NCBI GenBank assembly: GCA_028023455.1
Contig: JAQFVV010000006.1
Coordinates: 6,386,001 to 6,450,000 of the forward strand
Source of the DNA: Epiperipatus broadwayi
Taxonomy: Eukaryota > Animalia > Onychophora
Length of the DNA stretch: 64,000 nucleotides
Reading direction: 5' to 3'
Shown: one piece after another, positions 2,758 to 60,215 of the stretch
Layout: every line of letters begins with the position of its first letter
How positions within the stretch are numbered: position 1 is the stretch's first letter
Program-made: the position numbers and the translations under genes
Notes under the pieces: generated by a model
Told to the model about the DNA's origin: nothing
What the model saw: the letters and a program-made list of their open reading frames with translations, nothing else
The model's database searches: none

Positions 2758-3002
2758 GTGTAAAACTCACTATACGTATTGCCACACACAGCAAGCTAGA
2801 GTAATCAATGGATGCCAGAAGGCTTGTGCATAAAATCCCCATCTAGTGCCTACTCATTCAATATCTCCAGACTAGTTTCTGGCTTATGGCCTTCTTCAGT
2901 GAGGAGTCTTGAATCCGAAAGCACTGCAATATGTATAGTGAGTTTTGCTTGTTTTAACAACAGTTATAAGCAAGCATAAGAAATGGTGATCATGTAATGT
3001 TT
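2758..3002 (-). mobile_element. Family A HHR-bearing non-autonomous retroelement (retrozyme-like) with inverted 3'-end piece
   Basis: 2758-2928 is the reverse complement of the family A unit seen at 25663-26365. 2932-3002 is a plus-oriented copy of the family terminus ending ATGGTGATCATGTAATGTTT. Confidence 0.8.
2865..2904 (-). ncRNA. Minimal type I hammerhead ribozyme, family A, core intact
   Basis: Minus strand CCTCA-CTGAAGA-A-GGC/CATAA/GCC-A-GAAA-CTAG-TC-TGGAG. GUC triplet, palindromic stem III ACTAGT. Distal stem I is ATTCAA/TTGAAT versus ATCCAA/TTGGAT in other copies, a compensatory change. Confidence 0.85.
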
Positions 3003-3770
3003 ATTGGCTTAAGAAAGTAATAGTCAAACATCACCAAATTATTAAAAGAATGGAATGACCACCCATAATTTTAGTTTTGATGGTATTTAAACATTAATTT
3101 GCTGATATCGTTATAATTTAAAGACTGCAATCTGAATATTAGTTTGATATATATACAGCGTAAATGATCTGAGATCATTATTTAACTATTTAGAGGAGAA
3201 AAACTGTACCCATTTTAACAATCCTCAAATGCTAAATGAAATGTCAGCTTCACAAATATAATCATAAATAACAATGAAACTAAAACAGAAGTAATTAATT
3301 CTCAAAAGCTAAATAAATGAGCGGCCATTCCATTCTTTTAATAATTTGTTGATGTTTGAGTAATACTTTTTTTCATAGCTCTTTAGAGATTAGTTACTTT
3401 TATGTCAGTTATCTTTTATTATTAAACATAACCACATGAAATAATTAATCACTGACATTCCACTTTATGCCATGTAAAATATATATCCCAAAAGCACTTA
3501 CATCTTCTATTTTCTTGCATAAACTTTAATTCCATGGATAAAGACACCTGAAAAAATAAATGATCACTGAAAATGTATTTTATGTTGAACCAGTGTTACT
3601 TAGCCCAGATTACACCCTCTTGAACATCTTCATCATCCTTGTTTACTACTTATTATTATCAAATTATTATAATTTAACCTACATATGTCAAAGTTTTCCC
3701 ACACACAATTATGACACCCCACCACCACCAATAAATAAATACCTCAATACGGTTAAGCTTTAGGAAGTCT

Positions 3771-4065
3771 AGATGTTTACATTGAGTGCAATGGATTCCA
3801 TTACAAACAAGCAACAGGAAGTTATGTTGAGTGCAATGGATTCCATTAAAAACAAGCAACAGGAAGTTATGTTGAGTGCAATGGATTCCATTAAAAACAA
3901 TCAATAGGAGGTCAAGATGTTTACGTTGAGCGCAATGGATTCCATTAAAAACAATCAATAGGAAGTCAAGATGTTTGCATTGAGCACAATGGATTCCATT
4001 AAAAACAATCAACAGGAAGTCAGGATGTTTACATTGAGTGCAATGGATTCCATAAAAACAATCAA
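3771..4065. repeat. Minisatellite, six units of 45 or 54 bp
   Basis: CAATGGATTCCAT starts at 3789, 3834, 3879, 3933, 3987 and 4041 (periods 45,45,54,54,54). Confidence 0.9.
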
Positions 4066-4786
4066 ATGTTTTGTTGCTTGAAGTTCAAGCATCAAAAATG
4101 ATAGAATTGAGCTGTGACAAATTGACTTTGGACTCTAGAGTCGGCCATTCTATATATCAAATGAAGAGGGACAACAGATCCATTCAACTGATTAAACTGT
4201 TTCCCCCCTTGACTAAGGGTCAATTCAGAAAACTTTTAGTTCTTAACTTCATCATTTCTATTACTGCATATTGAATTGTTTAAAATGGTGTCACAATTTA
4301 AAACATTAAAATGGAAACAAGATTTCATGACTTTCATCTCAGTTAAAAGAGCATTCTTTATTATTGCTATATGCACTAAGTCCGTTAGCTGTATTATCCT
4401 CTAAAATTAGTTTTTGTGTCTATCACTCTACCACTATTCAAAACAATACCAGGAATCGAAAAAATATATATTTATCAAGTTCTTACATTTTCATTTACCA
4501 GTGTCAAACTTCCTCCACTCACAACTTTGATGCCATCCATTTTAGATAAATACAATAATGATTGTTACTAATCATTTTCGAAACTAGAGATTATCTCTAG
4601 CACAGATATAAACTTTAAACCTCAGTTAAAGATTAATATATCTGACTTTTTATTTATTTTACATACAGAATTATTAACCGTTCTCTTTCTTGTGTGTAAT
4701 ATCTTATAGATATAATAAACACCTCTACACTTTCCCATTCTTTTTAAATTCATTTAAATAAAGATATAATAAAAGACAAATGATCC

Positions 4787-4826
4787 CCAAGATGCATTTC
4801 ATACTGAATCAGCACTCATCAGTTGG
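4787..4826 (-). ncRNA. Orphan minimal type I hammerhead ribozyme, family B-like
   Basis: Minus strand CCAA-CTGATGA-G-TGCT/GATTC/AGTA-T-GAAA-TGCA-TC-TTGG. Stem III palindrome ATGCAT, AUC triplet, upstream CTGGACCAA shared with family B. Confidence 0.75.
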
Positions 4827-5171
4827 TCCAGGTCACAATCTCTTATATATATCTTTATTATATGAAAAATATTTATCAAGATGTTTGCACAGCATACATT
4901 AGACTTCTTTAATTGCTTCCACTAGAATTTAAAAAAAAAATAAAGCTATATTTATATATCATAACATATTCAGAATTTATGGTATCTCTGGCATATTATA
5001 AATATTATGCATATAGCTGTAAATTTCCCATTCAGTGTATTATAAATAATAAGCATAATGTGTTAAGTCATACATTGCTAATGTCTAAAATGTTAAATAA
5101 ACACAAATGAATTTACTTTTGTCTGCAGTAATAGAACAACCAATGAACTTATATCAAAACAAAAAGGCTAA

Positions 5172-5590
5172 TTGTTTTATTGCTTGGGAGTTCATATGAA
5201 GTTTGAGCACCGGAATCAATCCCGGGATCTCCTATTCCCAGGTTGGTTGCTCTGACAACTGTGCCAAACTGCACAGGTAAAGTGACATATAAGAAACAAT
5301 CCTAGAACCTAACAATCCCAAGATGGATGCTCTATGAACAGGACCAAACTGTGCAGATAAAAAGGCATGGCTTTATTGCTCAAGATTTCACAAGAAGTTT
5401 GAGTATTAGAAACAATCCTGGAACCTAGCAATTCCAAGAAGGATGCTCTACGAACTGGGCCAAAGTGTGCAGGTAAAAAGGCATACGGTTTTGTTGCTCA
5501 AGAATTCATAAAAAGTTTGAATGCCAGAAACAATTCTGGAACCTCCCAATCCAAAGATGGATGTTTTACCAACTAGGACAAAATGCACAG
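5172..5590 (-). mobile_element. Tandem array (about four units, ~115 bp) of tRNA-derived SINE family 1
   Basis: First unit on the minus strand has A-box-like TGGCACAGTTG, B-box-like GGATTGATTCC and the family tail TTCATATGAACTCCCAAGCAATAA. More degenerate units follow head-to-tail. Confidence 0.65.
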
Positions 5591-6143
5591 AGCTTATATG
5601 AAAATGAAATTAGATAACAATAAATGCAAAAATGAAACTGTTTTATTGCAGATATAAACAATTTTCAAGTGAATTTGAAGTTTGCTTAATATTATCCAAG
5701 TCGAATCAATAAATATTAACTTTTTAATTGCCTTGAGAAAGATCAAAATCATCGCTAATATTTACAGTCTGAAATTCCTTAACTAATATATTTAGACCTA
5801 CAATATTACTCACTCCCAAATGGCATGTAATACATTAAGTCTCACAGTGCTAATATCCAAACTACTAAATAAACAAGTGTTTGTTGAACAGTTTGGTTAT
5901 CAGCATTACGAGATTTGACCATTATTTGTCATTCTTTGAGAAGGAGATATTATATATTACAGGCTATAAATATATAATATTTATATACTAAACACACGAA
6001 ATTATTTCTTGTGTAATTCTTTGTAAATATTTTATCACAGATATAATTTAACCTTTAATTTTTCGTTATAATGCAAGTATTCAAATACCCCAAAATACTT
6101 TTTTAGGTAGATCAACATTTGATTTATATAAACATAATAGATA

Positions 6144-10187: not shown

Positions 10188-10767
10188 ATGCAATACAGAG
10201 GGCGTACCAATAGCTCAAACAAGCTCTTAATTAATAAGTGCAATATGAGAAAATATTTAAAATCTCTAACTAGAACATTCTCATCCCCAGACCAACTGTT
10301 TTTGAGCTTATGGCTCACATCAGTGGAGAACTAGAATATTTGGATACTAGATCTAAAATATAAACTCAAAACCCAGTAATGTCACGTTATATATGACTTG
10401 CTTTATTAATTATTATAATTTTACCTTTAAGGCTTTGGCTATGCTGAGGCTATTAAAATATGGTGGATCTGAATTTAGTTCAGTCCCATATAGCTATTTA
10501 AGTTAGTAAGCTGGATTTAAAGACATTTTCATGTCCAAAAATTTCAGAGTTTCTACTTAAATATACATTTGAAATAAGTGCTGAGTTTTGAGTTTATATT
10601 TTAAATCTAGTGTCCAAATATTCTAGCTTTCCACTGATGTGAGCCATAAGCTCAAAACCAATTGGTCTGGAGATGAGAATGTTCTGGATAGAGATTTTAA
10701 ATAGTTTCTCATACCGCAATTATTAATTAAGAGCTTGTTTGAGCTATTGGTATGCTCTTTGTATTGC
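10188..10767. mobile_element. Family A2 fold-back element (~190-bp inverted arms), each arm with a variant HHR
   Basis: 10188-10376 is the reverse complement of ~10578-10760. The spacer shares GCTGAACTAAGTTCAG-type sequence with family A and with 56660-56975. HHR-like motifs at 10285-10327 (-) and 10630-10671 (+). Confidence 0.8.
10630..10671 (+). ncRNA. Hammerhead-fold motif with non-canonical core (U9, A12)
   Basis: TCCA-CTGATGT-GAGC/CATAA/GCTC-AAAA-CCAATTGG-TC-TGGA. All stems are perfect but A9 is T and G12 is A. Confidence 0.6.
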
Positions 10768-11275
10768 ATTACATATTATATAACCTCAAAACTAAACAGT
10801 CTCACAAAATAACAAAAATAATGTCAAGAGCCTACAGTCAATGGCAAACAAAAATAGTTAATAAGTAAAATAAAGAGTAAGATGCATAATCAATGAGCTT
10901 ACTTATATCATTTTATATTCCATGAAAACACAATTTTCATGAGTATTCATTTTTATTGGAAGCATCTCATAAAATAAAAATGAAACTATTATTCAATAAT
11001 ATTTATTTAAAACAATGTTTTTACTTAATTTAGCAAGTAATGCACTAAAAATCAAAGAATATTTTATTTCTTCAATCATAATTTAAGGATTGAATTAATT
11101 AATTTATGGATACCCCAAACTGTTATTTCTAGTTGGCTGAAAAAAAAAATTGTTTGGCTTTACCCACATTATTTATCAAATTAAATGAAAGTGTTTTTTC
11201 TAATATTGCAGTTTGTTCACTATACTTTAAACACTTTTTGGCAAAAACTTTTTATTATACATATATGCATATACA

Positions 11276-11314
11276 ATCTTATGTTTCGACTGTCCTGCAG
11301 TCTTCTTCAGAGTC
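11276..11314 (-). ncRNA. Minimal type I hammerhead motif, family D (mirror copy)
   Basis: Minus strand GACT-CTGAAGA-A-GACTG/CAGGA/CAGTC-GAAA-CA-TA-AGAT. Confidence 0.7.
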
Positions 11315-11357
11315 ACTTTTACTTTAAATGTTTTTTTTTTACTTTTAAAGTAAAAGT

Positions 11358-11396
11358 GGCTCTGAAGATGACTGCAAGGCAGTCGAAACATAAGAT
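11358..11396 (+). ncRNA. Minimal type I hammerhead motif, family D
   Basis: GGCT-CTGAAGA-T-GACTGC/AAG/GCAGTC-GAAA-CA-TA-AGAT. Perfect 6-bp stem II, weak stem I, ACAT probably decayed from the palindrome ACGT. Confidence 0.7.
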
Positions 11397-12307
11397 CATG
11401 TATGGTTTTTGCTAAAAAGTGTTTAAAGTATAGTGAATAAGTTGCATTTATATAAGATATTATAGCAAAATAAAGGAAGTGGTAAATTTGGTAAATATTT
11501 ATAAAATATTGTATATTATTGCTATAATATCAAAATATTTAGCAGCAGATGTTTTGTAACTATTCATGCTCAAATTTAAAAAATGAGAATGTAAACAATG
11601 TTGCCATATTTCTAGTATTTGAAATGAAATTGCGGTGAAATGATGTAAAAAAAAAATTTTGTTTAAAAGACAGTGTTTTAAAAAAAGCAAGTTTTAGTTT
11701 ATTTCATGAGTACTAATGTATAATATGAATTGTGGACTTAATCAATGAAGTATTGAATACACGCTCTCAGATCTAACCACTTCAGATTCACCTATTTATA
11801 TAGAAAATAGGTTGAAGTAAAAAAGAGTTCCCCTCTTTTTTTCCAATGCGTAAGCTTGTGGTTAAGACCTGTAGAGGTTCCTACCTTCACATTTTCAGCC
11901 ACATATGCTTTGGGTTTATTGCCTTGGTAAATATTAAACAATCAAGAGAAATTAAGATTTCATTCTTCATTTCTTTTCGATTTTAATTAACGGGAAAAAT
12001 GATTTTTAGTGAATTGGTCATGAAAATTCATTGAAAGTGTAATTTTAAAAATATATACTGCCATCTACTGTGCATCACTGAAAACTTAATGAACTGATTT
12101 CAATGCATTTGAAGTTTGGCTAGACAACTATGAAATATTTCAGTATCATATTGCATTGCCATTGATGCTTAACATATGTATAAAATTTGAAGAAAATCCG
12201 TTCGCTAGAAGTATAGTAAAAATTATTTACCAAGATTTGATCCAAACAAACAAACAAAATTTCCAGTTAAATAGAAGTGGTTAATAAAAAATAGTGATAA
12301 CCAAATG

Positions 12308-18694: not shown

Positions 18695-19303
18695 GTTGTT
18701 TAAGCCTATCTATGATCTTATTTATAATTTTGCAGCTTCCTTTTTCTCTGCTGCTATAATTTTAACATTTAAAAAACCCTGAAAATGTCAGCATTATATG
18801 AAGCTTTTTGCATGATTTGAGTTTCCCTATTTTTTATGATAAAGCTATGAAGATAGCTAGTTTTTGCTTGGCAGTGTTTTAGTCTGAGCCAAAATACTAA
18901 CTATTGTAGATTTGTAAAAAAAAAAAAAAAGTAATTAGTTTACAAATTAAAGGTTATGATGCAATCTTTTTGTAAGATTTATTTTTAAAAAGTCAACTCT
19001 TAGAAAGTTCATTATGGCAATTGGAAGCAGTATCTATTGGATAAAAAGAAATAGTTTTTGCCTAAATGGTAAGTAGAATATTTTTTTACATTTTAATAAA
19101 TAATTTATTAATTTTTAGAAATTTTTTTTTGATGATAACTAATCCTATATATATATTATTTTTTAACATAAAATTCAAATATTTCATATTTTGTCATTCT
19201 AACTTTTTGAATAAGTAAATAACATCCAATAGCAGTGTGCTCCATTGTTATAGTTAAGAACTTTGTTTAGATATTTATTTTTATATTTAAAATAATAATT
19301 GCA

Positions 19304-19341
19304 TCTCACTGATGATGCCAGTAGCAGAAACCAGTCTGGGG
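19304..19341 (+). ncRNA. Orphan minimal type I hammerhead, family A-related
   Basis: TCTCA-CTGATGA-TGC/CAGTA/GCA-GAAA-CCAG-TC-TGGGG. Core and GUC intact; stem III is ACCAGT rather than palindromic ACTAGT. Confidence 0.75.
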
Positions 19342-19747
19342 TTGGGGATATTCTCAAAGCTTGTTAAGATCTTATTTTGCAAGCTCTATATATAGCATTT
19401 GTAAATACAAGTTTTATTAAATTAAGTCATGTGACATCTGACTTGGATTTTTTTATCAATTTGTATTTTTATATTGGACTACATTTGTTGCAGGTGTAAA
19501 TGACTTGCAATAAATTCATTTTCATATACAAGTTCTTTTGCTGCAGAAAAATATAATTCTTTTGTTTGCTTAGTACTTCCATCACTGCAAGATTTAAGAT
19601 ATTTTATCATATAAGATTGTTATTCAGAATATATTATATACAATTTTCTTCTTCCTCCTTTCTTTATGTATTGATTTTGATATTTACATATCATATTATT
19701 TCCAACCTTCTTATACACTTAATACTATTTTTTACAACAAAACTTTA

Positions 19748-22652: not shown

Positions 22653-23090
22653 TAACTGAAACACAGGCTTGTTATATACCTGTGGCTATATATATGTAAT
22701 ATAGGGTATATGAGCACAGACTTTCACACCACCCACCTCTCTCCACTCTATCTAATAACACTGATATACCTAAACACATATATGCTGAAAAGATAAATAA
22801 TCACCAATATACGTATTTCATGCTAAACCAGCAATCATCAGTTGGTCCAGACTATCATCTTTACACACATATATAGTATAAGTGCTCAGATATATATTAA
22901 GATAGACTATCCTCATAGTTTAATGGACAGGCTTCAATCCACTCCACACTCCAACTCTTCAACCGTCCATCCAATTGAAAATCTGATGATGGAATGCTCA
23001 AAGGTTATCCTGAGGCCGAGATTATTGTCACACCCATGTTGACCTAAGGTCAATCTGAACCCCACATATACAGGACATAATCCATTTAAT
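22653..23090 (-). mobile_element. Family B HHR-bearing element, nearly one monomer
   Basis: Reverse complement of the 466-bp unit at 44649-45380, with the same 3' end (GT(G/A)TTTCAGT). Confidence 0.85.
22803..22846 (-). ncRNA. Type I hammerhead ribozyme, family B, fully intact
   Basis: Minus strand ACCAA-CTGATGA-T-TGCT/GGTTT/AGCA-T-GAAA-TACGTA-TA-TTGGT. Stem III palindrome ATACGTAT, AUA triplet, stem I extended by ATAGTC/GATTAT around a TGG bulge. Confidence 0.9.
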
Positions 23091-23420: not shown

Positions 23421-25758
23421 CCATATGGCTTTTTATATATTACAAGGTTGTGCGTGCTTATCATCATCTTAGTATTTAGATAAAGTCACTTATAACAATA
23501 TTTTATGTACTTTAATTTCGATATATTTTCATGTGAGAAGAATACGATACTGGAATATAGTATCTAACAGATTTAAATTTTAGTCATAAGATATTACTTT
23601 TCTTCATAAAATATATTTTGAATGTTTTTCATGGTTGGTCTTTGTGAAATTATCACAGAATCCTGGCCGCTTAAAAATATGTAGAATGAATGCACATATC
23701 ATTCATCAACATTACAATTAAGTTAAAACAATGGTTAGATTTTAAAATAATTAGCCAAAGATGGAGCTACAATCAATGGCAAAGGAGATATGAAGCATCT
23801 AAATCTGGTGATCTGAAGATCTAATGGCACCACTTGGCATAATTGAACAATAGGAAGAGCAAAAAAATCCAACGGGCAAGTGTATGCAAATAGAAACAAA
23901 AAGTTCCTACTACTCTGGGGTGACTGAAATACCACAAACCAGTCTTTTGATAATATTAAATTATCCTAAAATTGTGTAACTAAGGACTGACAATAGTTTC
24001 ATTTTTTAAAAATCATAAATTTACATTTTTTAAAATTTCTCTTGACACTGAACTAATAGTTTATTGGAAATGGTAATTTTAGTGAACGCTATCTAATTTA
24101 TTTCTCAGCAGTATATATATAAGCATGTCATTTTTATAGAGCAAAATGGTTGGATAAAATAATATTTATTTGAGTACTTATATATAATCACTTTGCCAAA
24201 AACTTGACAGACATATTTTGTTTAATTATCCATTTTCAGGGACGTCAACGTATTTTTTTTTCATCAAAATTATTTTATCGAACATGATACTTGTTAAGTT
24301 TAAAAAATATTAAGAAATCAAATATAAATTCATATTATGTTTAAAAAGAAATATTTTTTAATAAACGTCATTCATGACATTTAATTTGTTTATGTATATT
24401 ATAACGTACAAACCATTAACACAGTGTGAACATTATCGTAACTTTTTCATTTCCTGTAGTACTTTTATTCAAGCTGATGGTCAAATTATTTTTCCTAATT
24501 TTTTGCAAAAGTGATTAAAATTTGGAATCTCCAGTGACAGAAGCTATAGATTATTTTCACAATTATGGGATAATGCTAGTGCCCATACAAAAAGTGTGTT
24601 AATGTGAACAGAGACACAATGGTGATGTAATCTCAAAACATGGTAGAAGTGAATATTCTTTCATCATGTTTTTTTATTTTATTAGTTCTATTAAATTTTA
24701 CTTAATTACAATCATTTGAAGTTTTGTGTAATTTCTTGTCTTTTTATAATCATCTTTAAAAAATAAATTCAATTAAGTATTTAATACAATATTCATCTTT
24801 TTAAAAAAACAGCCATATTGTTAAAAAAAAATTATGCCCCTGAAAATGTACTATTAATAAAAATATGCCTGGCGAGCTTTCAGCAAAGGGATAATGGGAA
24901 TATATATAAGTACCTTTACTTGTTTCTTTACTATTTTTTTAATTTAAATTTATCTTCATTAAAAACAAATCCATTAAACAACTTTCTAGATATTCTCTTT
25001 CCATTTATGTTATTGAAAATAAAATCTCTTTTTTAATATAAAAGGCTTCCTTAATCATTCTAATTTCAATGAAAATGTTTAAATTTCTTTAAATAATCAA
25101 AAACATTGTAATTTTTATATTTTAAATTCTAGTTATTTTCTTCTTAGTGGCTCAAGCACAATTTACATTCCCATTGTTATCTCTACAATCTAAACATCAA
25201 ATTTTATAAATTGTCTTCATATTATCTAAACTGTTTATTGTTTCCCTCATTTAAAATATTTTAATTAATTTTCAACTTATTCATTAGATTAAAATTTATT
25301 ACTGGTTTATACTTTTAATTAATATACATTTTTAAAGAAACTTTTATAAATGTTTGTTTTATTCACTTTAAAACTCATTCTTTTGTTTATTTTTATTGAA
25401 GAATTTTAAATTCATTTATATTTTTATTTCTGAATAGGAATGTAAATGTTTATTTATTCCTTATTATAGTCATTGTATTCTGTTTCATTTTTTATATTAT
25501 TAAATTCGTGTTGTAGTATTATTTCATAATACATTATTATTATTTAGAGGGAGAAAGCATATTATGAATTTTTAGAAATATTGAAAATATATATAGCTTT
25601 GTATTTTGGAAAATGTTTAACAAATGTATTTTACCATTAAACATCACATGATCACCATCTCTTTCATTCTTGTAGTTTTGTAGTTGAGATAAAAGGTGGC
25701 TGCTGGATGGTTGCATTAGATCCTAAGATCTAGGTGGAGTGCTCTTAGATCCATGGCT

Positions 25759-25797
25759 CCTCACTGATGAAGACCATATCCAGAAACTAGTCTAGAA
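25759..25797 (+). ncRNA. Family A hammerhead (core intact, stems I and II decayed)
   Basis: CCTCA-CTGATGA-AGACCATATCCA-GAAA-CTAG-TC-TAGAA. Confidence 0.65.
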
Positions 25798-26208
25798 ATA
25801 TTGGATGGGTAGGCACTAGATAGGGATTTTATGCACAAGCCTTCTGGCATCCATTGATTACTCTGGTTAGCACAGGGTGGCACTACTGTATAGAGTTTTG
25901 CCTTGTTTAATAACAATTATGTGCTAGTATGAGATGGTGATCATGTGATGTTTAATGGTTTAACACCAATACTGCCTAGTAGAATAGTGGTGTCTATGGT
26001 TGTTAAAGAGCCAGACATCAAAATGTATGGGTGCTGAACTGAGTTCAGACCTATATGACTATATAAACTATTGAGCTTAGATTGAAAATATTATTGTGTT
26101 TTCAATTTCATTCGCATAAATTTTGTAGTTAAGTAGAGATAAAAGGTAGCTGATGGAGGGTTGCATTAGATCCTAAGATCTAGGTGCAGTGCTCTCAGAT
26201 CCAAGGCT

Positions 26209-26248
26209 CCTCACTGATGAAGGCCACAAGCCAAAAACTAGTCTGGGG
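26209..26248 (+). ncRNA. Family A hammerhead with G12A
   Basis: CCTCA-CTGATGA-A-GGC/CACAA/GCC-A-AAAA-CTAG-TC-TGGGG. Confidence 0.7.
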
Positions 26249-26504
26249 ATATTTGATGAATAGGCACTAAAGAGAAATTTTATGCACAAGCCTTCTGGCA
26301 TACATTGATTACTCTGGTTGGCATAGGGTGGCACCACTGTATGGAGAGTTTTGCCTTATTTTACCATTACTTACTTAAGAATCTGAAACATTTGACACTT
26401 AATAATAAAAAGCAATAGTACCAACTGTAGATTACTTAATAATTTTGATTAAAGAAGATATAGGGGAGAGAACAAACAGACATCATTGATATCTTTGAAA
26501 GTAT

Positions 26505-26735: not shown

Positions 26736-27835
26736 ATAGAAGACCTGAAATGTATTTGTTGCTAAAAGTGAGTTGAAATACAAAAACACTGAAACCTGGA
26801 TTCCAAGAGATTATAAATAATCTAAGGAAAAAACCACATATGAGATGGAAGGAAGAAATAAGAAGGTTTACTGGGATGATGAGTAAATGTTTTGGATCAG
26901 AAAACTTAAAATTCAAAAAAATCTTAATATTCTGAATATATAAACCACTAAGCTACATACAAAAGTAAGATTTCAAAACAGAACATTACATCAAAAAATG
27001 TGAGGAGAAAACAACATTTCTAAAACAAGCTTTATAACAAAAACTTATTAATGTATTATTAATTTGAAATATTATAAACCCCAAGCTCGAGTGCAGAAAG
27101 TCTTATTTATATAGAGAAAGGATTAATAAAGTCTGTCACAATAATTTGTTGGAACAATAACTCAAGAGTTCTTCATGATTATTGGACTATTTGAAAATAT
27201 TTGAACACATGCATCTAATTGCATAAATTGAGTAATTTAAATAATCAAGTCACATTTAAAATTAATTATAGTGATTGGAAACAAATACTAAATATAACCT
27301 TGTAGGAATAAAAATACTGCAGTAATATTATTACGTCATTTCTAAGAAACATTTAAATTAATAGGCTGGTTATAATAAGAAATCTACATGAATAAGTTAT
27401 ATGACTATGAAACCTACAGTAAATCAGAAAACTATAATTAAGTCCTTTTATTAAATATTCTATTAATGTATATATATATAATCAAATAACAATGTTAAAT
27501 TGTAATTAAGGACATTATAAATAATACAAATTTGGTAGCTTTCAGCAAATATTAATTTAGCCATTTTCAGTTACCTGTTAAAAACTGATACTGCTATAAT
27601 GTTTTGTTTCATAATTATACTAAATTGTAATTATGTATATTATTAGCACAAATAATCAAGAAATAATATTAAATTGTAATCATGGAGATTAATACATTGT
27701 ACAGGCTTAAATATGCATTTATATATGTAATATATGCGAGATTTGAACTCAGACTTTCACATGACCCACCACTCTCAGTGCCATCTCATATTGCTGACCC
27801 ACCTGATCACACACATGTTGAAAAGATAAATAATC

Positions 27836-34600: not shown

Positions 34601-36232
34601 TCGTTAGCCATTATCCTCCAAGAAAACATTATATCTCTTTATAACATCTCTGGCGTATAATTCTTTTAATTTAAACAGGGTTTGACTTTCTAGATTTCGA
34701 AATTAATAATTGGGATGATGCAATAAAGTTTAGTTGCTTTACGAGTTAGTAAGTAAACAACTTACCCAATTTCAGCTTATATGGGGGGAGAGCTGTTAAT
34801 TAGTTATGGATTGATTTCTATATTATTTATGGCCATATTTATCGTCATGCATCAGTCTATCACCGTTATTTTATAATTATAATAAACACATATTGGATTA
34901 TCCTTATCAGCTAGGTAAGAAAAGTTCTGAAGATGAATTTGAATTCAAAGACAATGGATAAAACACAATATAAAATCTTTTCCATTTGAGTGACAGTTAA
35001 TATTATTAGTTATTTTTTTCCTCACCTCATAATAGTATTAGTCTGTAGATTGTACTTTATAAGCTAATTGAGTTTAACCAGAGCATCATCTTATTAAAAC
35101 TGTTCAAATTTCATTGTAAAATATTTTTAGGAGGTCTGCTACCAATGTGGTTTCAATTGAGAGCAAGTTCAGTCATTCACGTTAGATGTTCTCTCTCTGG
35201 CTTGCCTCCAAAAAGTCTGACTATTTATTACCAGATCCCTTACCTTACTAGCAGCAATCACATTCAGAGAGCATCATTACCTATTGGCCCATACTAAGCA
35301 ATGGTATGATTTTATACATTTGTTTACACATTAGCCATAATTATTCACCCTTTGGCCATGTTTATACATTGGTTATCAACATGTTTACACATTGGTTAAT
35401 AGTAATGAGTGCTCAATCCGATTAGATAAGGAAGGAATCTAGACTAGTCCACTTCTGAAGGCAAGGACAGATATGACACTTTGCATATTCAACCCAATAA
35501 AAAGAAGTCTTTACAATATATTTACTAATATAACATTCAGATATAGGAAAATATATTGATCTATCATGTGGTTTATATAGATCTATACATCTAAACTTTA
35601 AGATTTTTCTAATTTTAATTTAAAACTGCTTTTGCATTTTATTACCTATGATGACCAAGTAGCATAATTTGGCTAGAGTAGCCTATAGTATAAATAAACC
35701 TGTTTTCAATTACAGGGTAAGAGCTCTGAGGAGATGATTATTAAATAGTCAAATGTCAGCTAATTTGCAAAGTTTAAACAATATAAAATCTTGCATTGCA
35801 TTGTATTGTGTACATAGAAGAGTGTGAAATTATTTTTTTTGTATTTGTAAGAATAATAACTTAGCATACAATGTCTCACTTAACATCAAAATATCACGAT
35901 TTTGTCAGTTCATTAATATGTATTTTAGGAGCAGTTCTAACTCTATTCCAAATCCATCTCATTGTTAACGTGAGCAATCAATGGTCATTAGACAATAACA
36001 CTATCGAAACATTACATATGCTTTTAGTAACAATTTTTCTCATTCTTTTCCAGAGCCATCTATTGCAAGATTGATTAATCAATTGTCACTAATGATGTCA
36101 CTATCAAACACCATATGACATCTCAGATTACTCTCAACACATGATTCAGAAACTGTTCTCATTCTACTGCAGTGTCACCTACTTTAAACTTGAACGATTA
36201 AGATACTAGATAGCAGTTTTCTTATATCCATA

Positions 36233-36273
36233 TTCCCAAATAGGTTTCCGACTTTTGCCTTCATCAGTAAGAA
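36233..36273 (-). ncRNA. Diverged family A-like hammerhead
   Basis: Minus strand TTCTTA-CTGATGA-A-GGC/AAAA/GTC-G-GAAA-CCTA-TT-TGGGAA, followed by TATGG like family A GATATTGG. Confidence 0.55.
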
Positions 36274-36840
36274 CTCAGATTAAAGTTAGAATCAGTACCA
36301 ATATATACCTAACAGCCATTTTCAACTGTTTTATACAAGCTAATAGTTTGATAGTAGAAAAAATTCTGTCTTCAAGAAAGCCTATTTGCTCCAATAGCTT
36401 TACATCATTTGTTGCTCAGGGATTCTTATAAAATTTAAAAACTGGAATTAATAGAATTGTGCCCTGATTCTTGTTAAGAGGATGGCAAGCAATGACAACC
36501 AAATGATGATCAATTATTGTTAGATTCTGTTAAAGTGCCTGTCTTCATGCGAATATATAACATATAACTAAATAAAGAGCTACTAAAATAAATTGTTGAG
36601 GATGATAAGTGAGGACAAACTATAGTGATGATGATAGATGCGATCATGGTGTTCTATTGCCTACACAATTTTCTTTGTGAGAGTTCTTAAGACACATTTC
36701 TAAATATTGAGATGCTAAAATAAATTGTATAAGAGAATGACAAGTAATGGCAGGCCGTGGCTAATGATGATGATCAAGTGTTATAGCTTGGTCACCTATA
36801 TCTACTATCTTGTTATTTAACTTCTCCTACCATACATACA

Positions 36841-44221: not shown

Positions 44222-44420
44222 CAAACATCACATGATCACCATCTCTATACTAGCACACTCACTGATGATGGCCACAAACCAGAAACTAGTCTGAGGATAT
44301 TGGATGAGTAGGCACTAGATAGGGATTTTATGCACAAGCCTTCTGGCATCCATTGATTACTCTGTTTGGCACAGGATGGCACTACTGTATGGGGAGTTTT
44401 GCCTTTGTTTAAAACATTAA
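44222..44420 (+). mobile_element. Family A element with ~35-bp inverted cap and intact HHR
   Basis: CAAACATCACATGATCACCATCTCTATACTAGCAC cap is joined just upstream of the HHR; the element ends after GAGTTTTGCC. Confidence 0.85.
44258..44295 (+). ncRNA. Minimal type I hammerhead, family A, core intact
   Basis: CTCA-CTGATGA-TGG/CCACAAA/CCA-GAAA-CTAG-TC-TGAG. Confidence 0.8.
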
Positions 44421-44725
44421 CTACTAGCAGTGTCCATTCCATATTATTCAGAGAATTCCTTTTATTATTCGTTTATGCAATCCAGAGGTCAACAGTTTGC
44501 TTCTGGACACAGCAAAAGCCAGAAATGATAGAATTGAAACCGATCTGATAGTCTGTTATATTTTATCAATGAAAGATCTTTTTGTGCCATAGGTAAAACT
44601 ATGATCACAATAAATTTTTAGTATCAGTTCATTATTTTAATAGTGTTCCCTTAAAGTATGAAGATTGGCTATCTTATTATATATCTGAGCACTTATTGCG
44701 TATATGTGTAGAGATTATAATCTGG

Positions 44726-44769
44726 ACCAACTGATGATTGCTGGTTTAGCATGAAATACATATATTGGT
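44726..44769 (+). ncRNA. Family B hammerhead, core intact
   Basis: ACCAA-CTGATGA-T-TGCT/GGTTT/AGCA-T-GAAA-TACATA-TA-TTGGT, with distal stem I ATAATC/GATTAT. Confidence 0.85.
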
Positions 44770-45191
44770 GATTATTTATCTTTTCAACAAATATGTGTTC
44801 AGGTGTATCAGTGATATGAGATAGAGTGGTGAGCGGTGGGTCATGTGAAAGTCTGTGCTCATATACCCTATATATTAAATATATTGATATAGGTATATAA
44901 TAAGCCTGTATTTCAGTAATTACATAGTAGAGATGTCTGCCCACCCCTTGTATATGTATTAAATGGATTATGCCCTGTACATGAGGGATCAGATTGACTT
45001 TAGGTCAATAGGAATGTGACGAGAATCTCGGCCTCGACTTAGCCTTTGAGCATTCCATCATCAGATTTTCAATTGGATGGGTGGTTGAAGAGTTGGAGAG
45101 AATTGAAGCCTGTCCATTAAAGTATAAAGATTGGCTATCTTAATATATATCTGAGCACTTATTGCACATATGTGTAGAGATGATAATCTGG

Positions 45192-45235
45192 ACCAATTGA
45201 TGATTGCTGGTTTAGCATGAAATACGTATATTGGT
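45192..45235 (+). ncRNA. Family B hammerhead with C3U
   Basis: ACCAA-TTGATGA-T-TGCT/GGTTT/AGCA-T-GAAA-TACGTA-TA-TTGGT. Confidence 0.8.
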
Positions 45236-45438
45236 GATTGTTTATCTTTTCGACATATATGTGTTCAAGTGTATCAATGATATGAGATAGTTGTGAGCGG
45301 TCGGTCGTGTGAAAGTCTGTGCTCATATACCCTATATATTACATATATTGATACAGGTATATGATAAGCTTGTATTTCAGTTAATATTGTTCAATGTTAT
45401 ATGATTTTTTTATATTACTTTCTTGTAAATGAACACAT

Positions 45439-46060: not shown

Positions 46061-47052
46061 CAAACATCACATGATCGCCACTCTTCATGCTTACCCAAGC
46101 TGTTTTTCACAAAGGCAAAACTCTCCATACAGTAGCGCCAATCAGTGCAAGCCAGAATAATCAATAGATGCAAGAAGGTTTGTGCATAAAATCCCTATCT
46201 AGTGCCTACTCATCCAATATCCCCAGACTAGTTTCTAGCTTGTGGTTTTCATCAGTGAGAAGTCTTGGATCTGAGAGTACTGCACCTAGATCTTAGGATC
46301 TAATGCAACCCTTTAGCAGCCATACTTTTTTTTAGCTAACTATAAAGCTTTGAGTCCAAAATGAAAACACAATTATGTTTTTAAGCTAAGCTCATTAGCT
46401 TCTATAGTTGTATAGATCTGAACTAAGCACAGGAACCATACTTTTTGGTGGGTTTGGTTCTTTAATAACCACAGTCCCTATAATCATATTGGGCAGGATT
46501 GGTATTAGACCATCAAACATGACATGATCACCATTATCCTCAGACTAGTTTCTAGCCTGTACCTTGCACTGAGTGACACTACTGTATGGAGAGTTTTGCC
46601 TCTGTGAAAAGCAGCTTGTGTAAGCATAAAGAATGGTGATCATATGATGGTTTAATACCAATCCTTCCCAATAAGGATTATGACTGTGGTTATTAAATAA
46701 ACAAAGACACCAAAAAGTATGAATGCTGAACTGAGTTCAGATCTATACAACTATACAAGCTAATAAGCTTAGCTTGAAAACCTTATTGTGTTTTCATTTT
46801 GGACTCAAAGCTTTATAGTTAGCTAAAAAAGTAAAAGATATCTCTGGAGGGTTGCATTAGATCCTAAGATCTAGTTGCAGTGCTCTCAGATCCAAGGATT
46901 TTCCCTGATGAAAGCTACAAGCTAAAAACTAGTCTGGGGATATTGGATGAGTAGGCACTAGATAGGGATTTTATGCATAAACTTTCCTGCATCCACTGAT
47001 TACTCTGGCTTGCACTGAATGGCACTATTGTATGGAGATTTTTGTCTCTGTG
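46061..47052. mobile_element. Family A ~1-kb fold-back (two near-monomer arms in opposite orientation)
   Basis: Minus arm 46061-~46530 has the terminus motif at 46061 and 46514 and an HHR at 46221-46259. Plus arm ~46560-47052 has an HHR with CTGATGA at 46905 and G12A. Confidence 0.88.
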
Positions 47053-48340: not shown

Positions 48341-48683
48341 GATTTAAATGTGATATGTTGGACTACTTCCATCATCTATGAGTGAATGTTGAATGTATAG
48401 AAAATTTTAAACTTTATTTGAACTTTCCAAATACACACAACTTGATAGTAATAACACACAAATAGCCAATACAGGTTAGTAATTATGCAACATTTCAAGT
48501 AGTATTATTCTCCATTCTTCTTCAGGTGTTGCTGGCCTGATATGCGCAGTGACAGTATTTGCATAGAAGTTGAACTCGGTGTTGATGGCCTATATATGCA
48601 CAGAGACAATATTCAATTAGAAATTGAATTGGCACCTTTAGATTCTCGAATATCAAATTTAAGGCAAATGCTCTAACCAACTG
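48341..48683 (-). mobile_element. Family C HHR-bearing element
   Basis: Homologous to the arms at 53902-54493 and 58637-59131. HHR at 48485-48529: ACAC-CTGAAGA-AGAATGGAGAATAATACTACTT-GAAA-TG-TT-GCAT. Confidence 0.8.
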
Positions 48684-54493: not shown

Positions 54494-54497
54494 TATA

Positions 54498-55540
54498 TAA
54501 TTAATTACAATTGTGCTTTACGCAAAAAAGTGAAGCTTGACTAAAATATTATATATGGCTTAGCGCTTTCAGAGACTTCAAGTCTCCATATTTTTAGCCT
54601 TATTTAATTAAAGTTTATTTATTCAAAATTTATGCAAAATTATAAAGCCCAATTTCTGGAGATTGCAAAGCACGACTCCTTGCAGTTTATTGCACAGTTG
54701 TCACATGCAATAAAGCCTGCTTCCTTAATTTTTTGCTTCACATCGTTATGTTCTGTGCACGGTGCTCTTGCCACAGTGGGCTCGAACCCATGGCCTGTCG
54801 CCTTTTGGTGCTCGAGGAATATAGATTTGTTTTCCGCATTATTTATAGCTCTCCGGTACAAATAATGATGTTGAGATGTTCTTGTTGTAATGTTGGCACG
54901 GGTCTCTCCATAATATGTTGCTCTACATCCATTGGTTGGGCATGAAATCCTAAAAACTGCTTGGGCTATTTGATCAGAAGGTATTTTGTCTTTGGTATTG
55001 TTTATCATTCTGTTTGTTGAAGGTGGGGTGTAGAATCCTAGTTCAAAGGACTCAGCAAATATTTTATAATATTTCCCAGCCACTGATGGTATGTAAGGTA
55101 GCAGTATTCTGGGTTTATTATTTTTCATCGTGTCAGTTTGCAACTTAGTTTGAAATTGCCTGATCTTTTTGTAGATAATGTTGTGTGAAAATCCAACATT
55201 TTCTAGCTCTTTAATATAATTTGTGAGGTTCTTTTTGCAGTCAGCTTCAAATTTACATAGTTTGTGATTTCTGTGCAGGAAGGAATTGAGTCCAGCTAAT
55301 TTATGTGAATTGGGCGAGTTCAAATTTGGATGTATAAATCCTCGAATTTCTACTGGCTTGACCATCATTGCATAGGTAAGTTGGTGTGGATCTCTATGAA
55401 CTCAAATAGCCAAATATTTAACATTGTGCTGGAGGTTTTCAGATGTGCAGTTAATTGTTAAGGAAGTTTGTGTTTGTAGCCATATATAATATTTTAGTCA
55501 AGCTTCACTTTTTTGCGTAAAGCGCAATTGTAATTAATTA
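54498..55540 (-). mobile_element. 5'-truncated Penelope-like element (EN+) with 63-bp inverted termini
   Basis: 54498-54560 is the reverse complement of 55478-55540 with one mismatch. It encloses a minus-strand ORF with a GIY-YIG endonuclease, and an HHR-like remnant lies at 54557-54599. Confidence 0.88.
54640..55368 (-). pseudogene. PLE RT thumb/linker plus GIY-YIG endonuclease, uninterrupted 242-aa C-terminal fragment
   Basis: HPN..SP.SHKL and ILLPYIP, then VFRISCPTNGC..TYYGET..TR..QH..EH..TGH: a GIY-YIG with the intervening CC and downstream HH typical of PLE endonucleases. Confidence 0.85.
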
Positions 55541-56035
55541 CTACTCAGAGGTGAAGTAGAAAATTAGTATTTTATCACATGTATAGTAGCTTTTCTCAAT
55601 CTTAGGGTCTGTCGAAATTTTTATGAGTCATAAAATGGTAGAAGACAGACAGAAAACAACAGAGTCGTTTATTCTGTTTTTATTTTCTAATAAAATTGAT
55701 TATTTTGTTAATTTGTTTTCCCAGCAAATAAAATAAATATAATACAAATTTTTTTTTAGTGAGTCTTATTTTTGACATGGTCAGTTTGGCCTTATTATTG
55801 TAATTATTTGATTTGAACAGATAGTAAAGATTCAAGCAGCACCCTTTTATTTGGGTCATGTGCCAATATAAACAAATTTTTTGGATCACAGTGTAAAAAG
55901 GTTGATGCCCTAAAGCAGTGACTTTGGGAGAGATTAATTTTTACCTTCTTAGTTCCTTCTCTCGTGGTTTTCTCTGTGATACTCTTACTATCATAATTTT
56001 ATATCAAATTCAAGAATTTCCCAATTAATTAGTCA

Positions 56036-56975: not shown

Positions 56976-57279
56976 ATTATAAATTAAGTAACGTGGTGTG
57001 TGATTTGATTTCTTTTCAACACATCACAATATTTATTTGTAGAAACTTGTAAATTCATTTTTATTATGTCAGTCATTATTTAGTTTATAACCTGTAAAAA
57101 ATAATCAATTACTACTATGACCCATTTAACTTTTTTGTCCCCATATTTCTTTGAGACTGAAATTATGGGTATTTGTAGATATATGAACGTGAAACGAAAG
57201 TAACTAACGCTCTCCCCACGAACTATGTTTAATCTTTTAATCGTGTATCAAAAAATGAACAATGGTATCACATATTAAA

Positions 57280-57651
57280 CCACTAAACATCACATGATCA
57301 CCATTCTTTATGCTTACACAAGCTATTTACACAGGAGTCTAAACTCTACTATAATGCCATTCTGTGCAAGCCAGAGTAATCAATGGATACAAGAAGGTTT
57401 TTGCATAAAATCTCTATGTAGGGCTTACTCCTCCAATATCCCCAAACTAGTTTCAAGGTTGTGGATGTCATCAGTGAGAAGCTTGGATCTGAGATCTAAA
57501 CCTCACTGATGAAAGCCACAAGCTAGAAACTAGTCTGGGGATATTGGATAAGTAGGCACTAGATAGAGATTTTATGCAAAAAACCTTGCATTTATGGTTT
57601 ACTCTGGCTTGCACAGAATGGTGCTACTGTATGGAAAGTTTAGCCTCTGTG
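57280..57651. mobile_element. Family A fold-back with back-to-back HHRs
   Basis: Minus arm 57280-57493 (HHR 57440-57478) and plus arm 57501-57651. Confidence 0.88.
57501..57540 (+). ncRNA. Minimal type I hammerhead, family A, intact
   Basis: CCTCA-CTGATGA-A-AGC/CACAA/GCT-A-GAAA-CTAG-TC-TGGGG. Confidence 0.88.
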
Positions 57652-58804
57652 ACATCACATATTCCTTTAGCTTTTATAATATCTAAGCATCATTCAATAA
57701 TATGTTAGTGCCATACTGTATCCTCCCCTATTTGTAAACTGGGTTTAAACTAATGATGCCACCTATTTCCTTAATTTTGGTGTTATTTAAATGCTGTACT
57801 TAAATTCTGGTGAATATACAAAGTTCATGCTCTGTGTTATAACCCGTCAATAAATATATGCTTAAATACCATCAAAACTAAAGAAATAGATGTTATTTTT
57901 TGTTTATTGACAGTAATTATTGGTTTACACATAGCTTATGAAGGATTTAAGTTCCTTCTATTTCAATTTCATATAAGTTAAACTAAGATTATTTATATAT
58001 AGATTTGTGGACGTATTTTTAATAATTTGAAAAGATATTATTCTAAATGATTATAAATGTTAAAATAACAGTAACTGCTAGTTAAATCATTTAGAAGTAA
58101 TTTTAAAAATTGTTTTAAAAAGTTTATCTTAAAATATTATTTTCATCTTATACTATCAAATTTTAATTTTAATGATATTTGAGATGTTAAACATTTCACA
58201 AAAATATGGTAAACAAATGAGAAAAAAATACACATCTTTAATAAATCATCACCATATTTATATAGTCATTTTTATTCATTTATGTTATTTTTATTTTTAA
58301 AATAAATTCTAAAATAAATCCCCCCCCCCCTTCCATAATTCCTTACTAAAGAGCTGTGACGGAAAAGGCAGTATTAAACCAGAAATTCCAATAGTCACCT
58401 AATGAAACTGAATAATTTTCCATTCTTCTTTCACTGGCCAAAAATAGCTAGACATCCACTGTCCGATCAATATTGCATGGTTACTTAGTTTACCTTAGCT
58501 ATTAGAGGAGAAAATCCCAAACTTCAAAATTTTTTTTAGTTTTATCCAGCATAGATTCAAACCCCAGATCATAAATACAGCAGAAAATGTGCTCTCTCTA
58601 CACTATTAGCAGCAATAAATAATATAACAATATTGTCTGAAAGTTTGTGATGATGGTATATTATTAGATGGGATATGTTGAACTATTTCCATCATCTGTG
58701 GGTGAATGTTGAATGTACAGAAATTTTTAAATTTTATTTAAACTTTTCAAATACCAACAACTTGTTAATAATAACACACAATTAGACAACACCGATTAGT
58801 AACT

Positions 58805-58849
58805 ACACAACATTTCGAGTAGTATTAGTCTCCACTCTTCTTCAGGTGT
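58805..58849 (-). ncRNA. Minimal type I hammerhead, family C
   Basis: Minus strand ACAC-CTGAAGA-A-GAGTGG/AGACTAATA/CTACTC-GAAA-TG-TT-GTGT. 6-bp stem II; ATGT inferred to derive from ACGT. Confidence 0.8.
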
Positions 58850-58956
58850 TGTGCTCAGTTGGTTAGATCGTTTGCCTTAAATTCGATATTCAAGAATCTA
58901 AAGGTGCGAGTTCAACTTCTATGCAAATATTGTCACTGTGCATATCAGGCCAGCAT

Positions 58957-58994
58957 CACCTGAAGAAGAATAGAGATATACTCGAAACATTGTG
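58957..58994 (+). ncRNA. Family C hammerhead (stem II partly deleted)
   Basis: CAC-CTGAAGA-AGAATAGAGATATACTC-GAAA-CA-TT-GTG. Confidence 0.65.
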
Positions 58995-59384
58995 CAATCA
59001 CTAACCTGTGTTGTCTAATTGTGTGATATTACTAACAAGTTGTTTGTATTTGAAAAGTTTAAGTTTAAAATTTTCTGAGCATTCATCATCCACTCACAGA
59101 TGATGGAAATAATCCAACATATCACATCTAATAACAATATTGTTACTTGAATAAAATTAAAATTATGAGCCCAAGGCAGTCACATGATACCTAGGCATCA
59201 AAATGACAAAGATTTCTTTCTAAAGCAAAAATAGTACAGTATTTCATTTCACCACTTCGCTGAATTGAATTTTTCATATTTCTATAATAGGTCCTTCATT
59301 CCATTTTTGTAAACCCAAACTCTTCTAAAAATATAAAGAAACTAATTTTATTTAAAATTAAAAGCATAAAGCTAAACTAATCAA

Positions 59385-59812
59385 TAAATAATCAAAATTA
59401 CACGAAATTCACAACTCAATGAGACTAGCCAAGAAAATAAAATCTAAAACACTACCAATAGTTCACTGCTACAAGCAGATTTCTCAAGTGTAAAGAACTA
59501 CAAAATAATATATTTAAACTAAACATTACCCACAATTCCACTTACCTCCCATACACCCTTAATATTCCCATCTACCCTTAATATTAAAAAAACTTTTACA
59601 TAAGTGAACTGCTTCAGAATCACAAGTTCTTTTAATATTAAGGGTTTCTGGGAGGTAAGTGGAATTGTGAGTAATGTGTAGTTTAAATATGTTATTTTGT
59701 AGTTCTTTACACTTGAGAAATCTGCTTGTATCAGTGAAACCATTGGTAGTGTTTTAGGGTTTACTGTCTTGGCTAGTCTGGTTGAGTTGTGAATTTGGTG
59801 TAATTTTAATTT
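59385..59812. repeat. Fold-back element E (~165-bp inverted arms, ~100-bp spacer)
   Basis: AAATTCACAACTCAA..GACTAGCCAAGA..CCACAATTCCACTTACCTCCC is mirrored by GGGAGGTAAGTGGAATTGTG..TCTTGGCTAGTC..TTGAGTTGTGAATTT. Confidence 0.85.
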
Positions 59813-60111
59813 TATTTAGTAGCTATAATTTATTTACATTATAAATACTTATATATATAATTTAATTTAGTTGTAACAATGGAAAACTTTAATATATAAA
59901 TATATGTTTACTTTTTTATATCAGAAGACTTTTTTTTTATTTCAGTAATTAAAATAATTTGTTCTTATTGGTTAACTTTTTTGCTTCAATTGCAGGTTAT
60001 CATTCCATTTAGCAATCTAATGTAATCTTTCTTTAAAATCATGGACCTTTTAAAAAATGTATTCTTTCTCTTTCATTGATATCTCTTTTCTCTTCTCTAT
60101 TTATCCCAGAT

Positions 60112-60215
60112 GCAAAACTCTATAGTGCCACCTAGTGCAAGTCAGAATGATTAATGGATGCAAGAAGGTTTGTGCACAAAATCCCTATCTAGTGCCTACT
60201 TATCCAATATCCCCC
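60112..60215 (-). mobile_element. Family A fragment (segment downstream of the HHR)
   Basis: GCAAAACTCTATAGTGCCACC...AAAATCCCTATCTAGTGCCTACTTATCCAATATCCCC. Confidence 0.75.

Follow-up and report, generated by a model that had tools for sequence, protein, structure and literature searches.

Fossil insertions of short non-coding families carrying minimal hammerhead-like motifs, probably spread by Penelope-like elements, in an onychophoran genome

Introduction

The stretch analysed here, called the window throughout, comprises 64 kb of the genome of the onychophoran Epiperipatus broadwayi (positions 6,386,001 to 6,450,000, forward strand, of contig JAQFVV010000006.1 in the 5.6-Gb assembly GCA_028023455.1) and is AT-rich, with a GC content of ~29%. 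It holds about 30 copies of a motif resembling the hammerhead ribozyme (HHR), carried by repeats of four groups that we name A-type, B, C, and E, together with one truncated Penelope-like element (PLE). These repeats are probably fossil insertions of at least four unrelated families of short, non-coding retroelements, built round a minimal type I HHR and mobilised by PLEs. The families are new; the class has already been published, and the concept is not new. Minimal HHRs (min-HHRs) have been described in PLEs and in dispersed derivatives (Cervera & de la Pena 2014, PMC4209133), followed by retrozymes lacking long terminal repeats (non-LTR retrozymes) with circular RNAs (Cervera & de la Pena 2020, PMC7229834) and by retrozymes as non-autonomous PLE derivatives (Li et al. 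2026 preprint, 10.64898/2026.07.22.740005). An earlier description of the window, made from its letters alone and called here the sequence-only reading, was right in stating that the class is known. Loci with codes such as L019, L031, and L033-L045 are further stretches of the same genome outside the window.

Results

Hammerhead-like motifs in the window

A plain listing of CTGANGA sites with their context returned 51 occurrences in the window. The recurrent ones belong to repeats in which a hairpin comes after CTGANGA, then GAAA and a short palindrome, and finally U-H with a sequence complementary to the bases lying 5' of CTGANGA. A covariance model built from seven A-type motifs gave 15 matches in the window at a threshold of E<0.01, and BLAST with alignment yielded six B, five C, and four E copies, ~30 in all; the A-type, B, C, and E groups are unrelated in sequence, and both core boxes are retained in ~19 of the copies. 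These counts agree with the sequence-only reading, which had placed ~30 motifs in the 64 kb, about 20 of them with both core strands, and had divided them among at least four unrelated families.

A strict descriptor was applied that required all core bases, a helix I of at least 4 bp, a helix II of no fewer than 3 bp (at whose foot single unpaired bases were allowed), a helix III forming a perfect A...U palindrome of 2-10 nt, and a base other than G at H17. Four fully intact motifs were recovered from the window (+44262, +57506, -22841, and -4822), where chance would give 0.0098 per 64 kb, both strands counted (six matches in 610 window-equivalents of first-order Markov sequence); a descriptor search of this kind had been proposed by the sequence-only reading, and it came out in its favour. 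Genome-wide, the A-type pattern matched 79,567 times in 5.6 Gb and its reversed-pattern control 0 times, and the E-type pattern matched 13,496 times, with about 330 matches for its control. For comparison, 126,247 motifs are recorded in the much larger genome of the axolotl. Since the A-type total corresponds to ~0.9 motifs per 64 kb and the identical strict pattern finds 3 in the window, the motif density is largely a property of the whole genome: the ~30 copies are there, and the density that had been called striking is mostly genome-wide. Most window copies are mutated fossils, old and mostly inactive. A literature search with the motif strings found no paper.

The A-type group

The family A motif reads UCCUCA CUGA[Y]GA A GGC CACAA GCC A GAA ACUAGU C UGGGGA, and its relatives have helix I and the core in common with it and differ in the other parts. 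Helix II is AGC/GCU in A2 and UGGC/GCCA in another A variant. A' has UGC/GCA, a cargo different from that of A, and the helix III ACCAGU, which looks like a CpG-decayed ACCGGU. The intact ACCGGU occurs in relative F, whose helix II is GACC/GGUC and whose motif is fully canonical (UCCUCA CUGAAGA GACC CAUA GGUC GAA ACCGGU C UGGGGA), with G10.1-C11.1 and no mismatch; the F locus (L031:7214-7258) sits about 15 kb before the window, and F accounts for ~10 of 100 sampled A-type matches genome-wide. A further type, with helix II GAGC/GCUC, has as its helix III the 10-nt palindrome ACCAAUUGGU.

Family A copies have a common 3' end ~116 nt 3' of the cut site, with an alternative end ~50 nt further on. 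At 25634-26365 (+; 25642..26357 by the narrower bounds) stands a 1.6-mer of a 450-bp unit: its two HHRs are spaced by exactly 450 nt, the duplicated part (247/256 bp) shows 85% identity between the copies, an inverted arm of 20-29 nt stands at the 5' end (~25634-25661), and the insertion is flanked by a direct repeat of 10-12 bp, (A)TTTTACCATTA. The upstream motif (25756..25800, +; 40.3 bits) is decayed, with both boxes kept and mutations in helix II and in the 3' strand of helix I; the downstream motif (26206..26251, +; 71.3 bits) has GAAA changed to AAAA. Elsewhere in the window, a copy at 44218-44410 with a 9-bp target-site duplication (TSD) carries an intact motif (44254..44299, +; helix II UGG/CCA, ACUAGU, C17), and the motif at 2862..2907 (-; 71.5 bits) keeps both boxes, with CTGAAGA and GGC/GCC, and has ATTCAA/TTGAAT in distal helix I. 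Two head-to-head fold-backs belong to this group. One, of family A, spans 46061..47050, has a 12-bp TSD with one mismatch, and bears motifs at 46218-46263 (-), 46535-46577 (-, partial), and 46897-46942 (+); the other, of A2, spans 57277..57652, has an 11-bp TSD with one mismatch, and bears a decayed motif at 57437-57482 (-) and an intact one with helix II AGC/GCU at 57498-57543 (+). The A' motifs with UGC/GCA lie at 19301..19344 (+) and, in a second copy, at 56683-56728 (-), and degenerate A-like motifs lie at 36231..36275 (-; 24.5 bits) and 39787-39828 (+).

The GAGC type is represented by a fold-back pair at 10282..10675, with motifs at 10282-10331 (-) and 10626-10675 (+), which the regular expression missed and the covariance model recovered. 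In both arms the core reads CUGAUGU...AAA, so that U9 and A12 replace the sheared A9.G12 pair. Because both arms derive from one insertion, this variant may simply be a dead copy.

Family A was also encountered at the 31-mer level in public sequencing runs (X1-X15) labelled as nine organisms from six studies; since runs of nine organisms hold family A sequence, the family would be common to a group of related species.

Families B, C, and E

In its least decayed copies, family B reads ACCAA CUGAUGA GUGCUG GUU CAGCAC GAA, followed by one of two versions of helix III and H17 (AUACGUAU A in B1, AUGCAU C in B2) and then by UUGG. The B insertion at 44649..45380 (+) is again a 1.6-mer, here of a 466-bp unit whose repeats are 92% identical; its TSD is TTAATA[G/T]TGTTC (12 bp, one mismatch), and its motifs lie at 44726-44764, where both boxes are kept, and at 45192-45235, where C3 has become T. 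The B1 copies in the window all have a weakened helix II, including the intact motif at 22800..22849 (-), which reads ACCAA CUGAUGA U UGCU..AGCA U GAA AUACGUAU A UUGGU. An intact B2 motif is present at 4783..4830 (-), with a 6-bp helix II, AUGCAU in helix III, and C17. Outside the window, intact B motifs of ancestral-like form lie at L023:2798-2845 and L031:2201-2250. A head-to-head fold-back of family B (27720..28340) carries motifs at 27836-27879 (-) and 28211-28254 (+), in both of which the helix III palindrome is broken. The sequence GAAAatCTGATGAtgg (22983+, 45064-) was tried as a hammerhead and rejected: it lies on the antisense strand of the B unit, and helices I and III are missing in any permutation.

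Family C reads ACAC CUGAAGA A GAGUGG...CUACUC GAA ACGU U GUGU, and the window copies have ATGT or ACAT at the palindrome. The predicted CpG-intact string GAA ACGU U GUGU has 1,316 exact copies in the genome and 0 for the control. A head-to-head fold-back at 58637..59130 is flanked by a perfect 13-bp TSD, ATAACAATATTGT, and holds motifs at 58806-58849 (-) and ~58954-58997 (+); further C motifs lie at 48488..48529 (-, CpG-decayed), ~54060-54104 (-), and 54316-54360 (+). In family E, CUGANGA is followed by one bulged base, a helix II of 5-6 bp with G-C as its closing pair, GAA, and ACGU or ACUGU with H after it. The family forms a hairpin of two inverted arms at 11271..11403, with motifs at 11276-11314 (-) and 11358-11396 (+) that read CUGAAGA and GAA ACAU; single motifs lie at 30223..30264 (-) and, more decayed, at 19752-19786 (-).

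Constant core and pairing helices

Across these unrelated families the core CUGANGA/GAA is fixed, while any base is found at N7, and C, A, or U, but not G, at H17. From one family to the next, helices I, II, and III differ in sequence and remain complementary or palindromic. Helix I occurs as CCUCA/UGGGG, ACCAA/UUGGU, ACAC/GUGU, and GGCU/AGCC; helix II as GGC/GCC, AGC/GCU, UGGC/GCCA, GACC/GGUC, GAGC/GCUC, GUGCUG/CAGCAC, GAGUGG/CUACUC, and GACUGC/GCAGUC; and helix III is palindromic in seven sequences (ACUAGU, ACCGGU, AUGCAU, AUACGUAU, ACGU, ACCAAUUGGU, and AGCGCU). Pairs were counted across families by inspection and script, because helix II, helix III, and the 3' strands come out misaligned when MAFFT is run on all families together. 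Between A9 and 10.1, C (A with GAGUGG/CUACUC) and E (A or U with GACUGC/GCAGUC) have one unpaired base, together with G10.1-C11.1; ancestral-like B and F have G-C at 10.1-11.1 without the bulge, and family A has an A.A or U-A pair there. Within the A-type group, a model-fitted alignment of 132 matches from the window and further loci had 83.2% of cells paired. Shuffling gave 80.6%, with 0 of 500 shuffles as high as the real alignment, and sliding the partners gave no more than 47%; one helix II pair was GC in 52 matches and AU in 51.

The sequence-only reading had held that the stems covary and the core does not, and the fixed core beside helices that differ and still pair agrees with this; the stem II variants it listed (GGC/GCC, AGC/GCT, TGG/CCA, TGC/GCA, and GAGC/GCTC) were all found in the window or the genome. 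Its further example, distal stem I as ATTCAA/TTGAAT, held in part: the double change exists in one copy (2862-2907), and the other ATTCAA copies are uncompensated, so that this pair counts for little as evidence.

Cofolding of two family A motifs (A1) predicts an intermolecular helix III. The RNA of a young A unit (L019:2035-2486) is predicted to fold with -165 kcal/mol (z = -7.1), its two ends being joined through a long extension of helix I; an old B unit likewise forms a long helix I, with a z of only -1.1. The motifs do not show the canonical loop 1-loop 2 arrangement: helix I is a long imperfect duplex without a defined loop 1, and the helix II loops are short and variable.

A truncated PLE with its own tail

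The PLE in the window (54498..55569, -) is 5'-truncated and retains the C-terminal reverse transcriptase (RT)/GIY-YIG part of an open reading frame (ORF) at 54640-55368. By itself this 242-aa ORF gave no Pfam match and no database homolog. It matches more than 150 scored genomic copies (161,018 first-look candidates), and it is identified as a PLE because RVT_1 is present in the longer of these genomic copies, and PF00078 together with PF01541 (GIY-YIG) in their remote homologs. Downstream, a 3' tail of 143 nt contains an HHR-like motif in decayed form; on the 5' side, an inverted 63-nt copy of the element's own 3' end (55478-55540) is followed by a 29-nt tail, and the whole is bounded by the 12-bp TSD TTATCACAT[A/G]TA with one mismatch. 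A second copy of the family, L031:4312-5580, is a head-to-head fold-back.

The tail motif, ~60-100 nt past the stop codon, reads GGCU AUGAUUA U GGAGAC..GUCUCU GAA AGCGCU A AGCC and carries the signatures of a min-HHR (a base past A9, G10.1-C11.1, and a palindromic 15.x-16.x). Its core has AUGAUUA in place of CUGANGA, with A3...U8 for C3-G8 in 97 of 100 sampled copies (tails including those of L033-L045). The motif has 357 exact genomic matches, and the window copy (54498-54640, -) has decayed to AAAAAUA. A linkage between family A and PLEs was considered at L044 and L045, where PLE fragments are preceded by A fragments; the two loci are not collinear in spacing, the 129-aa ORF in between is low-complexity, unique, and junk, and no link was established.

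Structure of the insertions

The longest stop-free stretches of A, B, C, and E measure 45-103 aa and have no Pfam match, which bears out the claim that the families are non-coding. Insertions of A, B, and C show 5' truncation, partial tandems of more than unit length, adjacent inverted 5'-truncated arms, a short extra tail, and TSDs of variable length (9-13 bp). All three families have head-to-head fold-backs whose 3' ends both point outward; the arms of these are unequal and variable in length, and the identical sequence also occurs as single and tandem copies. Most copies are single or folded back rather than tandem, and arrays of at least three A units, spaced 452-453 bp apart, are found elsewhere in the genome (L019). 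Arm ends seemed concentrated immediately 5' of helix I, but this hotspot was rejected as a sampling artefact of the fold-back copy used as query. The unit lengths of ~450 and ~466 nt given by the sequence-only reading are those of the two 1.6-mers, and the borrowing of a PLE reverse transcriptase that it inferred fits the TSDs, truncations, partial tandems, and inverted arms, which are as in the window PLE.

Other features

A mir-67 precursor lies at 32853-32934 (-; 68.9 bits, E 9e-14) and is indicative of a protostome genome. A weak tRNA-like sequence at 45442-45524 (+), 60 nt past the family B 1.6-mer, scores 34.1 bits in Rfam and is called by ARAGORN as an 83-nt tRNA-Val (TAC); possible identities are a pseudo-tRNA and the head of a short interspersed element (SINE). 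An ORF of 173 aa at 41007-41528 (-) gives a borderline zf-RVT match (26.2 bits against a cut-off of 27.5) and probably represents a fragment of another retrotransposon, of the non-LTR type. Under permissive settings, 11271-11403, 57432-57548, and 19793-19840 match the Rfam families MIR2619, MIR837, and mir-3149 far below gathering score; a plant or animal microRNA (miRNA) identity of these fold-backs was rejected, the matches being false positives from inverted retroelement arms.

Discussion

By their core, topology, and palindromic helix III, the motifs are predicted to be type I hammerheads of the minimal class. PLE insertions are marked by strong 5' truncation, partial tandems (pseudo-LTRs, pLTRs), a truncated copy placed next to the element in inverse orientation, and a tail of 30-40 bp (PMC8557442). 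Because families A, B, and C carry these hallmarks, as does the PLE in the window, a PLE enzyme would have mobilised them; the hallmarks that they have in common with the coding element are the main evidence. Under the mechanism that we propose, the elements would be transcribed as RNAs of more than unit length, in which the short palindrome of helix III would make a stable helix only when two motifs pair, and the paired hammerheads would cut the multimer to unit length. Because the ribozyme flanks form a very long helix I, the unit RNA would fold into a long rod, and it may be ligated into a circle. A PLE RT/endonuclease acting in trans would reverse-transcribe the unit RNA at staggered nicks, at times starting on both of the nicked strands, which would give rise to tandem and fold-back forms. 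Self-cleavage and circles of 450 and 466 nt are what we infer from the sequence.

Several observations weigh against this proposal, and many of them would suit a motif that no longer cleaves or never did, serving as a structural or RT-recognition module in elements spread SINE-like from linear RNA, with no circles. Min-HHRs cleave poorly in vitro (PMC4209133). The Rfam hammerhead models, a search with which had been proposed by the sequence-only reading, matched neither the whole window nor 121-141-nt slices round the best copies, at gathering score or at E<=10. In family A, the largest family, helix II has only 3 bp and borders on an A.A mismatch, a substantial A subfamily has spread with an A.C mismatch in that helix, and helix I of family E is only 2-3 bp. 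Folding energies of the motifs alone are no better than those of shuffles (z 0 to -1.8) and are uninformative for motifs of 45-50 nt. The A-type pair counts come from an alignment of related subfamilies fitted to the model, and independent covariation events are few because most of the covariation is between subfamilies; the cross-family comparison is the stronger argument. The public runs with family A consist of thousands of ~100-nt repeat contigs whose type was guessed, and are uninformative on expression and RNA ends. In the window and the loci examined, no PLE turned up that has termini in common with A, B, C, or E. The common 3' end of A copies lies downstream of the cut site and not at it, and their 5' ends are not clustered there: genome-wide, the cut site has 266 junctions, a control position lying downstream by 5 nt has 249, and the point where helix I begins has 123. 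Before this count, the inverted arm of the window PLE had been seen to begin exactly at the predicted cut site, other PLE copies beginning theirs at -15, +3, and +15 relative to it, and a junction at the cut site had been seen in 3 of the first 100 sampled A copies. On the genome-wide figures a fossil footprint of cleavage was rejected, and the one indirect in vivo hint of cleavage is removed; because circular or multimeric templates would hide ends, the lack of a pile-up neither supports nor excludes cleavage. A non-cleaving module nevertheless seems improbable to us, given that the core is strictly kept in unrelated families with N7 and H17 varying as hammerhead rules allow, that palindromes in seven different helix III sequences are sensible only for dimeric hammerhead folding, and that insertions exceeding the unit fit multimeric or circular templates.

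The copies might instead be solo pseudo-LTRs or 5'-truncated 3' ends of autonomous PLEs encoded elsewhere, an explanation that we consider unlikely. PLE insertions are heavily 5'-truncated (PMC8557442), the 2014 study took most dispersed single min-HHRs as probable truncated PLEs (PMC4209133), A-type fragments do stand upstream of PLE fragments at L044 and L045, and a full unit has been delimited for A and B only, not for C and E. Yet the A (450 bp) and B (466 bp) units close on themselves in the 1.6-mers with no coding sequence between the repeats, and A does so again in its arrays of three or more units; the A/PLE adjacency differs in arrangement between the two loci, with an intervening ORF found nowhere else, and the window PLE family has its own, different tail and motif. 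DNA-level amplification, as of satellite or fold-back DNA or of transposons resembling miniature inverted-repeat elements (MITEs), with HHR boxes arising by chance, could account for the tandem arrays and for several hairpin-like inverted repeats that score as miRNA-like hairpins in Rfam. We regard it as extremely improbable: the strict motif is expected only ~0.01 times per 64 kb and recurs in four unrelated families, the fold-back arms are uneven and the same sequence exists in single and tandem form, the 9-13-bp TSDs vary in length, and a coding PLE copy has the same fold-back form. PLE-mobilised retroelements built round a minimal HHR remain our preferred account of the window.

Within the A-type group, A, A', F, and the GAGC type have only helix I and the core in common, with helix II, helix III, and cargo all different. 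We raise, as a tentative and rather doubtful idea drawn from these comparisons, that the HHR module might be a portable cassette captured repeatedly by unrelated cargos, which may tolerate or even exploit core swaps. If the core variants (A3...U8 and U9...A12) cleave, this genome, with its ~10^5 motifs, would provide a natural atlas of mutations in the hammerhead core; for ribozyme biology it offers many natural helix variants and two candidate core-pair swaps. The present families would add several of very high copy number to the HHR-bearing, Penelope-dependent non-coding retroelements, the A type alone contributing ~80,000 motifs to this protostome genome of 5.6 Gb. In annotation, the families, their fold-backs, and the miRNA-like hairpins derived from them should be masked as PLE-type repeats and not treated as genes.

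Among known systems, the min-HHRs of PLEs (PMC4209133) resemble the present motifs in type I topology and conserved core, in a very short or absent, palindromic helix III that implies action as a dimer, in a short helix I, and in the unpaired base at A9/10.1 with G10.1-C11.1, seen here in C, E, and ancestral-like B (in B as G-C without the bulge). There, too, each genome holds many consensus families with compensatory changes, mostly as single motifs or as opposite-strand pairs 100-700 bp apart, in association with RT and GIY-YIG. The differences are that helix II of family A has 3 bp and an A.A mismatch, whereas 6-8 bp are typical; that the A-type pattern alone has 79,567 matches, whereas 2,000-9,000 min-HHRs per genome were reported in 2014; and that the PLE family here has AUGAUUA (A3...U8), whereas the variant in that paper is U3-A8.

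Autonomous PLEs with a C-terminal GIY-YIG (Penelope/Poseidon/Neptune; Craig et al. 2021, PMC8557442) agree with the window insertions in their 5' truncation, pseudo-LTR tandems, adjacent inverted 5'-truncated copy, 30-40-bp end tail, and HHR in the non-coding terminus, and differ in that A, B, C, and E have no ORF, the sole coding PLE of the window being the truncated copy at 54498-55569. Non-LTR retrozymes (PMC7229834; 10.64898/2026.07.22.740005) are likewise non-coding, 150-450 bp long, and low in GC, with one type I HHR per unit, tandem or more-than-unit length, TSDs above 4 bp, and a highly self-paired unit RNA, and they coexist with PLEs, which have been proposed as their mobilising partner and evolutionary source. 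Theirs are mostly canonical HHRs with loop-loop contacts in longer tandem arrays, whereas the families described here, known from DNA alone, carry minimal ribozymes and occur mostly as single copies, 1.6-mers, or fold-backs.

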